Virus record (IMG/VR): IMGVR_UViG_3300017963_000190
Location: 196,068-260,067 of that record
Direction: 5' to 3' (one strand)
DNA: 64,000 nt
Shown here one piece after another: positions 13,840 to 37,181 of the stretch. A program made the position numbers and the translations under genes. The notes beneath the pieces are model-generated. The model saw nothing but the letters and a program-made list of their open reading frames with translations, was not told where the DNA came from and did not search any database. The stretch's first letter is position 1. Each line of letters opens with the position of its first letter.

Positions 13840-13901
13840 ACTGATCCCTCTTACACAGCTTTTGGGGGTTGCATAGGATTCAGTAATAGATAACTTGTTT
13901 C

Positions 13902-13987
13902 GGTGAGTTGGCCGAGATGGTTTAAGGCGGTGCACTCGAACTGCACTGTACCGAAAGGTACCAAGGGTTCGAATCCCTTACTCACCT
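13902..13987 (+). tRNA. tRNA-Ser(CGA)
   Basis: GTGCA-CT CGA AC-TGCAC; long V-arm. Confidence 0.93.
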
Positions 13988-14070
13988 TACCGGATAAGCG
14001 ACGGCCGGTAGGCTTGGCCAGCCAAATCACCTAACTGGGTCACAGAGATCTTTTGGTGGTACGTCGCGCA
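13988..14070 (+). ncRNA. pseudoknotted tRNA-trailer RNA motif, copy 1
   Basis: TACCGG/CCGGTA, GCGACG/CGTCGC, GGC/GCC, TCACC/GGTGG; repeated after tRNA-Tyr. Confidence 0.65.
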
Positions 14071-14075
14071 AATCT

Positions 14076-14163
14076 GGCGGGGTGTCCGAGTGGTTGAAGG
14101 AGCCGGGCTGTAAACTCGGTGCCGCAGTGCTAAACATCGTAGGTTCGAATCCTACCCCCGTCA
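14076..14163 (+). tRNA. tRNA-Tyr(GTA)
   Basis: CCGGG-CT GTA AA-CTCGG; long V-arm. Confidence 0.93.
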
Positions 14164-14234
14164 TACCGGACAGCGACGGCCGGGAGGCCCTTTACGCCAA
14201 ACCACCTACCTAGGCTATGGGTGGTACGTCGTGC
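14164..14234 (+). ncRNA. pseudoknotted tRNA-trailer RNA motif, copy 2
   Basis: Same helices as copy 1 with different loop sequences. Confidence 0.65.
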
Positions 14235-14322
14235 GCCATGGTAGCGTCGCTCCATAGACGTGACGGCGCGTGGTCGGCAGAGAGTAGAGGATCGCAACCT
14301 CGATTTCTGTCCGATCACGAAC

Positions 14323-14395
14323 GGAGCGATAGTACAAATGGCAAGTGCACCGGGTCGTAACCCCGCAAATCTAGGTTCGAATCCTAGTCGCTCCA
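14323..14395 (+). tRNA. atypical tRNA (loop TCGTAAC, nominal anticodon GTA, short V-loop)
   Basis: GGAGCGA/TCGCTCC acceptor; GTTCGAATC T-loop; C33 and a 4-bp anticodon stem. Confidence 0.6.
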
Positions 14396-14425
14396 TTTCC
14401 TACGCAGTCTTGTAAAATACAGGGG

Positions 14426-15472
14426 ATGCCTATTTACGCTGGAATAGGGAGCAGGAATCCGTCTAGCAGTGTTTCTGCTTTGGCCCGAAAAGTAGCCCGA
14501 TACCTCGCTGTTAGCGGGCATACCCTACGAACAGGCGCCGCAAAAGGAATCGACCAGATCATGGCCGAGGCAGCCTTGGAGGTAGGCGGCCCCGTAGATC
14601 TCTGCCTTCCATGGGATACTTTTTCGAGAGATTGGGTGCGGCGCATACGTGATCGGTTTGGATCGCTGGTCCAGCTGGAACCGTTGCTTAGTAGCGATGA
14701 AGAAGCATTCCACTCGGTACAAGCATTCCACCCAAATCCCGACGCACTGAAACGCAACGGTCTTCGGTTGCACGCCAGGAATTACCGAATTCTACATCCA
14801 ATCGGAGGAGGGCTTGTACGTTGCGTGGTAGCCGCACCTCGGAATAATAGTGGCGGTACCATGCAAGGCGTACGGATCGCCGAGACATTGCAGGTACCTG
14901 TTGTGCGGTTGGACCTAGTCCCAGCTATGGACGTCAAACGTTGGTTGGACAAACGCCTTGGAATGAAGAAGCCAAAAGGTGCAACTCTGCTACAGGCACA
15001 GCGCCATGTGCAAGAAGCACTAAAACCTGGCGCCGGGGCAATTGATTGTCCCTGCTGTAAACAGCGGGTCCAGCTCTACAGGCGGCGCTTAAACAGCGAG
15101 ATGGCGCGCTGGCTGATCCTTCTATCCAGGGTGTTCCTGTCTAATGGGCGTAGGTGGGTAAGCGTTAAGGATTCACCTCTTAAAGAGACCCGCGGAGGGG
15201 ACTACGCCAAGCTGCAGCACTGGGGTTTAATCGAGCAGCGCCCAAACACTGATGAGAAGAAACGTACCTCAGGGTATTGGCGCCCAACTACAAAAGGGGT
15301 CAATTTCGCGAAGAACCGTACCAGGGTTCCTTCTCATATCTACATCTTCAACAACACAGTTTACGGGCAATCAGAAGAAACCGTTTCCATAGTAGACGCG
15401 CTAGGCGTGAAGTTCGACTACCGGGATGTAGTGCGCACAGCATTGAAGAGTAATACAAAGGAAAAGAAATGA
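14426..15472 (+). CDS. SLOG/DprA-like Rossmann domain fused to a Zn-ribbon/winged-helix-like domain
   Basis: YAGIGSR, LRTGAAKGID, SGGTMQGVRIA; CPCC. Confidence 0.7.
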   Translation: MPIYAGIGSRNPSSSVSALARKVARYLAVSGHTLRTGAAKGIDQIMAEAALEVGGPVDLCLPWDTFSRDWVRRIRDRFGSLVQLEPLLSSDEEAFHSVQAFHPNPDALKRNGLRLHARNYRILHPIGGGLVRCVVAAPRNNSGGTMQGVRIAETLQVPVVRLDLVPAMDVKRWLDKRLGMKKPKGATLLQAQRHVQEALKPGAGAIDCPCCKQRVQLYRRRLNSEMARWLILLSRVFLSNGRRWVSVKDSPLKETRGGDYAKLQHWGLIEQRPNTDEKKRTSGYWRPTTKGVNFAKNRTRVPSHIYIFNNTVYGQSEETVSIVDALGVKFDYRDVVRTALKSNTKEKK

Positions 15473-15766: not shown

Positions 15767-16549
15767 ATGGACGCAAAAAGCAAGGCTGAGTGGCTACGGA
15801 AGCACAGATACTGGTCATACAAAGAAATCTCTGTCCACCTTGGAGTTCCTAAGTCTACTGTTTGTTACTGGCTACGCGACATTCAGCTTACGGCGGTGGA
15901 GCAGGCAGAGATTGGCGCTAGAACTAAGGAGCTAGTTAAGCATGCTGCGATTGCATCAAACAAGCGCAGAAAGGGAGAGAAAAGGCGTTACGCGCGCAGA
16001 CGTTCTAGTGCTACTCGTGGGCCCAGCCACGCAGAGCGTGCTAGGGAGAACAGGCAGCATTTATTGACCAAAAGTAGGGAGCGTGTAAAGTTGCATGGAT
16101 TACAGATGACCCAAGATTCCTTGGCTTTAGTAGGAGCTGCTATTTACTGGGCTGAGGGGGAGAAAATCGGCAGTATGGCTTTATCCAACTCCGACCCTGC
16201 GCTCCTACAGTTGTATGTTCGTTGGTTGACTACTATTTTACGTGTTGATCCAAGAAGGTTATCTTTTAGGGTGTCCGCTCACTTAGATTGCTCCTTTTCT
16301 CACAGTGAGCTGGAAGAATACTGGCGTACTGTACTGTCTATGCCTAAGGCTGTATTTGAGAAGCCGTATTCGATTCCTATTAAAAATAAGAAGAGGAGAA
16401 AAAAGTTGAAGCATGGAATGCTTCGTGTGCGCGTTTCGCGCCCATTGCGTAGTCTTGCTAAGTATTACTCGGTAGCTGAGATCCTTGGTGTGGACGCCGA
16501 GTCCTTGTTTGTAAACCGTGTATCACCATTACACGTTTTGGAGGAGTGA
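15767..16549 (+). CDS. HTH + LAGLIDADG-like putative homing endonuclease
   Basis: SYKEISVHLGVPKSTVCYW HTH; VGAAIYWAEGEK...LSNSDP; paralog at 58129. Confidence 0.7.
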   Translation: MDAKSKAEWLRKHRYWSYKEISVHLGVPKSTVCYWLRDIQLTAVEQAEIGARTKELVKHAAIASNKRRKGEKRRYARRRSSATRGPSHAERARENRQHLLTKSRERVKLHGLQMTQDSLALVGAAIYWAEGEKIGSMALSNSDPALLQLYVRWLTTILRVDPRRLSFRVSAHLDCSFSHSELEEYWRTVLSMPKAVFEKPYSIPIKNKKRRKKLKHGMLRVRVSRPLRSLAKYYSVAEILGVDAESLFVNRVSPLHVLEE

Positions 16550-16624
16550 CCGAATTGGCGAAAGTGCTTGGCTTGAAACCAAGTGTACCGAAAGGTACTG
16601 GGGGTTCGAATCCCTCCTCCTCCG
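16540..16624 (+). tRNA. tRNA-Ser(TGA), intact copy inside the cassette
   Basis: CTTGG-CT TGA AA-CCAAG; long V-arm. Confidence 0.92.
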
Positions 16625-16625
16625 T

Positions 16626-16675
16626 TTGAAAGCCATTGGGCGAAAGCCCCGGGGGTTCGAATCCCTCACCTGCCG
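16626..16675 (+). pseudogene. 3' half of the disrupted tRNA-Ser(TGA)
   Basis: TTGAAA-GCCAT, V-arm GGGC-GAAA-GCCC, T-arm, ACCTGCC-G complementary to GGCAGGT. Confidence 0.85.
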
Positions 16676-16689
16676 TTAAGGAGGCGAAG

Positions 16690-32895: not shown

Positions 32896-32965
32896 GGCCC
32901 TTCTTGTAGCTCAGCTGGTAGAGCATGGGACTCCGAGGTCGTGGGTTCGAGTCCCACCTGGCCCG
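32896..32965 (+). pseudogene. degenerate tRNA lacking an anticodon loop
   Basis: Canonical D-arm and T-arm; anticodon arm reduced to TGGGACTCCG; acceptor mispaired. Confidence 0.6.
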
Positions 32966-36644: not shown

Positions 36645-37112
36645 ATGACCGACGATTGGAAAGAAAGGGCAGCTTCTATTTTGCTTCCTGGAGAAGTGAT
36701 CCAGGAGCCTGAGAAGCCTAAACCAAAGAAAATCAAGCGTAGTAAGAAGAAGCAAAGTTCTAAGCGGGTGCCTACAAAGGGTGTTTTTTCTTACGAGTAT
36801 AATGAGAGCGATGATGGTCTTCTTATTAAGGGCCTTCAGCGAGCGCTAGACGTACCAGCGGATGGTATAATCGGGCCTCGTACACTAACTGCCTGGAAGA
36901 ATGCCTATGATGCAGATGGCGTTTTTATGGTGAAGAACAACACAAATGCCGCAGTTATTTTGCCTGGCGTAGAGATTACGTTGGATCCTTTTGAGGAACG
37001 TATAATTGTAGTACCCAGTTCTGTGTGGCAGAACGATAATTTACTTGCAATGGTACGGAGAGCTTACATCAGCATTGCTCCAGTTCCTGTACCAGAAAAA
37101 TGGTGGCTATAG
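36645..37112 (+). CDS. peptidoglycan-binding domain protein
   Basis: LQRALDVPADGIIGPRT. Confidence 0.7.
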   Translation: MTDDWKERAASILLPGEVIQEPEKPKPKKIKRSKKKQSSKRVPTKGVFSYEYNESDDGLLIKGLQRALDVPADGIIGPRTLTAWKNAYDADGVFMVKNNTNAAVILPGVEITLDPFEERIIVVPSSVWQNDNLLAMVRRAYISIAPVPVPEKWWL

Positions 37113-37151
37113 CTCAGTTGGTTAGAGCGCTGGTTTGTGGCATCAGAGGTC
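37102..37151 (+). pseudogene. 5' part of a disrupted tRNA-His(GTG)
   Basis: G-1 GTGGCTA, D-arm, CTGGT-TTGTGGC-ATCAG, AGGTC, then no T-arm. Confidence 0.8.
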
Positions 37152-37181
37152 ATTAAAACTCTTGACGGCCACCCTTATTAT

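Follow-up and report, generated by a model that had tools for sequence, protein, structure and literature searches.

Organization of the tRNA locus and the two motif copies

The stretch of DNA analysed (the window) comprises the last 64 kb of a 260-kb virus record that is 74% complete. It carries 37 tRNA genes, nearly all on the + strand, none of which encodes CCA. Within this array tRNA-Ser(CGA), a class II tRNA with a GGTGAGT/ACTCACC acceptor and discriminator U13987, is located at 13902-13987 (+; ARAGORN; Rfam tRNA model, 55.3 bits), and a class II tRNA-Tyr(GUA) with discriminator A14163 is located at 14076-14163 (+; ARAGORN; Rfam tRNA model, 57 bits). The Rfam ends were used here, since the ends given by ARAGORN for some tRNAs run one base long. 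tRNA-Ser(CGA) is followed at 13988 by TACCGGATAAGCGACGGCCGGTAGGC and tRNA-Tyr by TACCGGAC-AGCGACGGCCGGGAGGC, starting at 14164. In both cases the sequence begins at the first base after the discriminator, as had been proposed in a preliminary description of the locus, and we found that the observation made there was correct.

Copy A of the motif (82 nt) spans 13988-14069 (+). Its U1 is 13988, P1 is formed by 13990-13993 with 14005-14008 and is extended by U13988-A14010, the pseudoknot 5' strand is 13998-14003, Pa is 14011-14013 with 14021-14023, the AAA is 14024-14026, Pb is 14027-14031 with 14055-14059, and the pseudoknot 3' strand is 14062-14067. Copy B (71 nt) spans 14164-14234 (+), with U1 at 14164, P1 at 14166-14169 with 14180-14183, the pseudoknot 5' strand at 14173-14178, Pa at 14186-14188 with 14196-14198, the AAA at 14199-14201, Pb at 14202-14206 with 14220-14224, and the pseudoknot 3' strand at 14227-14232. 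The two copies align over 83 columns, of which 54 are invariant. All four of the helices proposed earlier are identical between the copies, except that the last pseudoknot pair is G-C in copy A and G-U in copy B, whereas the 7-nt Pa loop differs at 7 of 7 positions, the Pb loop differs in length by 10 nt and the first linker differs by 1 nt, a pattern that uniform drift would not give. The pair was recovered by BLAST within the 260-kb genome (E 4e-4) and by a covariance model built here (70.6 bits for copy A and 97.5 bits for copy B), and no third copy was found in that genome. Folding energy alone was not significant (z -1.4 and +0.7), and the case therefore rests on comparison between sequences and not on thermodynamics.

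Copy B is followed by further structure, not included in the preliminary description. A hairpin, Pc, is formed by GCGCC (14233-14237) with GGCGC (14265-14269) and carries a lineage-variable insert. It is followed at 14270-14318 (+) by a long hairpin, Pd, with a conserved apical UCGC loop (single-sequence fold z -3.8), then by GAAC and the next tRNA. Copy A has neither hairpin, as tRNA-Tyr begins six bases after its last aligned base (14069). The tRNA that marks the 3' boundary of the spacer in the window, at 14323-14395 (+), is a second tRNA-Tyr(GUA)-like gene with a short variable loop (class I shape, unusual for bacteria) and C33 in place of U33.

Homologues and covariation of the motif

Exact-pattern scans of IMG/VR returned only a near-identical contig (L010) and chance hits in coding DNA, a scan of species genomes gave 33 hits, all of them chance, and a blastn search of INPHARED found only a tRNA match. 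Homologues were obtained by two other routes. The DprA-like gene located downstream (14426-15472) led to two contigs, L123 from an NCBI metagenome assembly and L124 from a Logan assembly, and one scan of JGI metagenome contigs with a degenerate pattern gave the contigs L156 and L183 (identical in the motif), L188 and L190, as well as the window's own contig. Together with the two copies in the window this makes seven distinct motif sequences, five of them from metagenomic phage contigs of other studies. More distant hits of the DprA-like protein lie in contigs without tRNAs or the motif, and an alignment of the DprA-like set was too diverse to search with. A 163-aa neighbouring protein found only itself. 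A 100-106 aa S24-peptidase-like protein next to the tRNA array of L188 (852-1169, - strand; also present in L156) led to no motif, since it is a very common gene with more than 3400 database relatives at about 70-80% identity, spread over phage contigs and very different bacteria (Polyangium, Bradymonadia, a planctomycete), which is unusually high conservation for a small gene. A conserved structural-region protein found three more related phage records, none of which carries the motif. One of them is a complete 350-kb genome (G004) in which tRNA-Tyr is followed after 1 nt by tRNA-His. Weak covariance-model hits at L244:11565, G004:67717 and elsewhere (10-14 bits) look like chance matches with no tRNA beside them, and L244:11565, on a further contig, reads as coding DNA.

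Outside the window the motif always follows a class II tRNA-Tyr(GUA), which comes in three clearly different sequence types. That of the L156, L183 and L188 group has an odd D-arm, and in L156 (86-171) the Rfam model aligns it only at 33 bits and with shifted ends. U1 follows the discriminator directly in five contexts (the two window copies, L156, L183 and L188), while in three (L123, L124 and L190) one G intervenes, so that in all eight instances the motif starts 0-1 nt after a tRNA. In L123 and L124 the upstream tRNA-Ser abuts tRNA-Tyr with 1-2 nt and no motif between them, and copy A is therefore a lineage-specific insertion of the bare module. The copied unit runs exactly from U1 to the base after the pseudoknot.

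Covariation among homologues had been named beforehand as a test of the motif, and in the alignment of the seven sequences it was found for P1 and Pb. P1 (columns 3-6 with 18-21) takes the forms CCGG/CCGG, UGAG/CUCA, CUCG/CGAG and UGCG/CGCA, with compensatory changes in three of four pairs and the fourth (G6-C18) invariant. The U1-A23 pair is possible in 7 of 7 sequences, and A2 faces G22 in six sequences and U22 in copy A. P1 is thus best drawn as U1-A23, A2 opposite G/U22 and four Watson-Crick pairs, and not as the ACCGG/CCGG helix proposed earlier. Pb has one compensatory pair (C-G to U-A) and one wobble change, and can extend to A39-U74. The Pa hairpin (GGC/GCN, 3 bp with a 7-nt loop of free sequence), which had been listed among the conserved helices, is only weakly supported, as L124 keeps 3 bp only by shifting register. 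The pseudoknot strands, GCGACG with CGUCG(C/U), are perfectly complementary in all seven sequences but are invariant apart from the G-C versus G-U difference at one pair, so that the helix is consistent with pairing but has no support from covariation. Overall 99% of cells are paired, against 28-49% when the partners are slid by 1-3 columns, and no shuffle in 500 reached the observed covariation score. G-U pairs occur only in the + strand reading, so the RNA is read in the same direction as the tRNAs. Conservation of a coding sequence was considered and dropped, since indels are not multiples of three, changes are compensatory and G-U pairs occur on one strand only. A codon-like UAY at positions 1-3, read by the tRNA-Tyr anticodon, was also considered, but there were too few independent variants to judge it. 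About 38 of 71 positions never change, although proteins shared by these contigs are only 26-66% identical, apart from one short 39-residue match at 74%.

In every copy that follows tRNA-Tyr the rest of the spacer is also structured, with Pc, Pd and a 3-4 nt RAAY tail before the next tRNA, giving a spacer RNA of about 160 nt. RNAalifold found nine predicted pairs with compensatory change, all in Pd. The next tRNA is the class I-like tRNA-Tyr in the window, L123 and L124, tRNA-Pro in the L156 group and tRNA-Cys in L190. The class I-like tRNA-Tyr (14323-14395 in the window, L123:2907-2980, L124:4079-4151 and L244:2932-3004) is almost identical across phages whose proteins are 53-66% identical, and in L244 it occurs without the pseudoknot motif.

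Comparison with known RNA families

It had been stated in advance that a match to a known Rfam family would remove the novelty of the motif. Rfam 15 returned only tRNAs and sub-threshold noise (sX4, SpF41 and a plastid UTR lying on the opposite strand of the tRNA), both at gathering score and at E<=10 on 13850-14450. A literal search of the sequence in the papers searched returned only unrelated primers, and the motif is new to Rfam and to the literature that was searched. The strand order is P1a, ACA linker, PKa, G, P1b, (G/U)A, Pa hairpin, AAA, Pb hairpin, (U/G)A, PKb, that is, a P1 hairpin whose loop can pair with the 3' end, as in a classical H-type pseudoknot, with two hairpins inserted in the third loop.

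Theta ribozymes, minimal HDV-like RNAs behind phage tRNAs (PMC10879173), occupy the same position in other phages, as the preliminary description had stated. They likewise start within +/-1 nt of the 3' end of CCA-less tRNAs in tailed-phage tRNA arrays, are carried by only some tRNAs of a phage, and are compact (about 60-80 nt), pseudoknotted and modular. For the motif, the position relative to the tRNA holds for its 5' edge only, and cleavage in the presence of Mg2+ was not assayed. The fold is different. Theta ribozymes have the nested double pseudoknot P1-P2-P3-L3-P3'-P1'-P4-J4/2-P2', with G1 at the cleavage site and a catalytic cytosine at the first position of J4/2 (PMC10879173), whereas here only one base (G17) lies between the pseudoknot 5' strand and the P1 3' strand, leaving no room for P3/L3, the first base is U in all seven sequences, and the junction before the pseudoknot 3' strand is (U/G)A in all seven. 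No HDV-family model was matched. The motif is associated with tRNA-Tyr or tRNA-Ser and not with Met, Sup or Leu, and it comes from saline, sediment or seawater metagenomes and not from gut.

The hatchet ribozyme (PMC6561176) is similar in length (about 80 nt), its cleavage site lies at the very 5' edge next to a U1-A first pair of a P1 hairpin, and upstream sequence is irrelevant. The U1-A pair at the 5' edge is found in the motif, but hatchet continues with a CAA linker and a single nested P2-P3-P4 arm with conserved internal loops and has no P1-loop pseudoknot, while here A23 is followed by two separate hairpins and a 6-nt pseudoknot strand. The pistol ribozyme (PMC4604425) has a short P1 hairpin whose loop forms a 6-bp pseudoknot with a downstream strand, and an A-rich linker after P1. 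The six-nucleotide complementarity is perfect in 7 of 7 sequences of the motif, yet with both strands invariant apart from the one G-C versus G-U pair, this does not settle whether that feature is shared. In pistol the pseudoknot strand lies between the 5' strands of P2 and P3, P2 closes around P3, and cleavage occurs at a GU junction 3' of P3. The motif has no enclosing P2, and its only positional constraint is at the 5' edge. Here Pb is a local hairpin supported by covariation, pairing of CCAC with the GUGG that follows Pc is not kept in L124, and copy A has no Pc at all.

The conserved cores of twister, twister-sister and hammerhead ribozymes (for example CUGANGA plus GAAA) are absent from the alignment and their Rfam models gave no hit; a hammerhead permutation was dropped for lack of the core. 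The strand order of the motif is also incompatible with twister and hammerhead. The guanidine-III (ykkC-III) riboswitch is a small H-type pseudoknot with a CCGG-type P1, a short purine-rich first loop and a 3'-terminal pseudoknot strand, but its model is not matched, P1 covaries freely here, two hairpins are inserted in loop 3, and the motif lies between tRNA genes, not upstream of guanidine exporter genes or of any gene, with no Shine-Dalgarno logic. It could still be argued that the motif is a divergent or permuted member of one of these classes (HDV-like/theta, hatchet, pistol or guanidine-III), as it shares an AAA linker and, if the pseudoknot forms, a P1-loop pseudoknot with pistol, a U1-A first pair with hatchet, the tRNA 3' niche with theta ribozymes and the H-type topology with guanidine-III, and non-circular permutations of ribozymes do exist (PMC10085705). 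However, the strand order is neither that of HDV, hatchet or pistol nor a circular permutation of them, and there is no catalytic C junction, G1, CUGANGA/GAAA core or enclosing P2. We regard this reading as very unlikely.

Possible roles in tRNA 3'-end formation

The preliminary interpretation, a possibly undescribed self-cleaving or 3'-protecting RNA whose topology does not fit HDV, pistol or twister, is partly supported. Neither self-cleavage nor 3' protection was tested, and the function of the motif remains open. The analysis demonstrates an RNA-level element on the tRNA strand, in which P1 and Pb covary, U1 is always able to pair with A23, so that the helix starts on the phosphate that would have to be broken, the base before U1 is free to vary (U, A or G), and the module was copied as an exact unit to a second tRNA 3' end. 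The rest is inferred. From general pseudoknot geometry, P1 (6 layers) and the 6-bp pseudoknot may stack coaxially, with the invariant ACA linker in the pseudoknot major groove, which would explain why that helix is fixed in sequence, and the invariant AAA along the P1 minor groove, which would explain why P1 can vary freely. The conserved cluster around U1-A23, A2.G22, the Pa base and A37-39 would form the active site, cleavage would leave the tRNA ready for end repair and CCA addition by host enzymes, and the 3' product would be trimmed at the next tRNA by RNase P.

Our preferred, though tentative, explanation is that the motif is a self-cleaving 3'-end module. The boundary is flush or nearly flush behind four different tRNAs, and 77% of tRNA-associated theta ribozymes, a proven precedent, lie within +/-1 nt of mostly CCA-less phage tRNAs (PMC10879173). 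The U1-A pair at the 5' edge is the geometry of hatchet (PMC6561176), and 71-82 nt with a pseudoknot fits the usual ribozyme criteria (PMC10085705). A conserved cluster (U1-A23, A2.G22, the base of Pa and the AAA) sits exactly at the boundary, and the free variation of the base before U1, the covariation of P1 and a conservation that exceeds that of the neighbouring proteins also speak for this explanation. Insertion of the unit into a tRNA-tRNA junction would be harmless only if it brings its own cut or is cut cleanly by a host enzyme, and a tightly folded domain flush against a tRNA needs a junction-specific cut; in G004 that slot is filled by a tRNA, which is cut by RNase P. On the other hand, no cleavage data of any kind exist, and as no RNA-seq run holding this sequence was listed, only DNA runs, transcript ends were not mapped. 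Ten comparable pseudoknotted candidates in one study all failed to cleave (PMC10085705), so the prior is low. Furthermore, only 2 of 37 tRNAs in the window carry the motif, a cut at U1 would not give the exact tRNA end in L123, L124 and L190, Pc and Pd are conserved although a simple cutter would not need them, the complete relative does without the motif, and no CCA-adding enzyme (PF01743) or RtcB was found in the 74%-complete genome. The base after the discriminator is U in 21 of 34 tRNAs, against 23% T in the window, suggesting that all tRNAs, these two included, may simply be cut by one host enzyme. RNase Z prefers U at this position, but that it is the enzyme concerned was not checked here.

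That U after the discriminator is the rule for the tRNAs of this phage speaks for a close rival, which is possible but slightly less favoured, namely that the motif is a stable small non-coding RNA housed in the tRNA array, with RNase Z cutting after the upstream discriminator to make its 5' end and RNase P cutting at the next tRNA to make its 3' end. In this view the pseudoknot domain would act in trans, as a pocket for a protein, a ligand or a host defence factor. The whole spacer behind tRNA-Tyr is structured and conserved, the extra G in three homologues would be harmless, and absence from a complete relative is expected of an accessory RNA. The T4 species 1 and 2 RNAs in its tRNA cluster and the herpesvirus tRNA-miRNA units cut by tRNase Z are precedents in which a structured non-tRNA RNA sits between tRNAs, so that tRNA-processing enzymes would define both of its ends, although they have no sequence or fold relation to the motif and are not known to start flush with a base pair on the tRNA discriminator. 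This model does not explain why U1-A23 and the flush junction are conserved, or why the module travels as an exact unit to another tRNA 3' end. Copy A has been kept intact without Pc and Pd while its loops diverged, and no partner protein or ligand is indicated by the gene neighbourhood, which differs between homologues.

Two other roles appear unlikely. The motif could be a tRNA surrogate for RNase P, its stack of P1 and pseudoknot imitating the acceptor/T-arm stack, so that RNase P would cut 5' of U1 and leave a 3'-OH on the upstream tRNA just as an abutting downstream tRNA would. The motif sits in the slot that such a tRNA occupies in G004 and in several arrays of the window, pseudoknotted tRNA-like structures such as that of TYMV are RNase P substrates, and RNase P makes the MALAT1 3' end in this way. 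The length of the stack fits (6+1+6, about 12-13 layers), but there is no single-stranded 3' tail, as A23 runs straight into the Pa helix, no T-loop-like cap and no hit to the tRNA model even at E<=10. With no enzyme assay performed, these features leave the comparison with an RNase P substrate undecided, although the strict sequence invariance of the pseudoknot and junctions is more than a shape mimic needs. Alternatively, a non-catalytic structure might delay or gate maturation of tRNA-Tyr, block exonucleases or switch with an alternative hairpin. A 3-bp hairpin built from invariant bases (G16-G17-C18 with G25-C26-C27) competes with P1, the pseudoknot and Pa and appears in MFE folds, and the motif is restricted to one tRNA species. 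However, this reading has no specific support, a blocker at the discriminator would stop tRNA use unless something else cuts there, and P1 covariation shows that the pseudoknot-compatible fold is the one under selection.

Few natural classes of self-cleaving RNA are known, and the only one tied to tRNA 3'-end formation in phages is the HDV-like theta family. It is possible, though doubtful, that the motif represents a new natural class, an H-type pseudoknot with two inserted hairpins that cuts at its own 5' edge to release CCA-less phage tRNAs. As its fold is unrelated to the theta ribozymes that do the same job in gut phages, this would be a case of convergent evolution, and the motif would be a compact 5'-edge cutter useful for making exact RNA 3' ends. 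If it does not cleave, it is still a new, strongly constrained RNA domain, more conserved than the neighbouring proteins, that a small clade of giant phages keeps next to tRNA-Tyr, a tRNA targeted by some bacterial defence nucleases, and it would then point to an unknown RNA function in phage tRNA biology.

Other unusual elements were seen around the array. An ORF at 15767-16549 (HTH_23 hit), which looks like a homing-endonuclease-type gene, ends inside tRNA-Ser(UGA) (16540-16624), and directly after that tRNA, within 15767-16680, lies a stray tRNA 3' half with variable arm, T arm and acceptor 3' strand (about 16640-16675). Two weak or partial Rfam tRNA matches not called by ARAGORN, at 32906-32958 (32.4 bits) and 37103-37173 (29.5 bits), may be degenerate or unusual tRNAs. 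Finally, the box CTTGTAAAATA(C) occurs 10 times in the window against 0.6 expected (14409-14419, 19207, 21299, 28778, 34551, 37888, 42987, 49651 on the - strand, 54761 and 63667), always in gene orientation and just upstream of ORFs or tRNAs. It is also conserved before the DprA-like gene in L123 and L124, and is likely a phage promoter or regulatory box.
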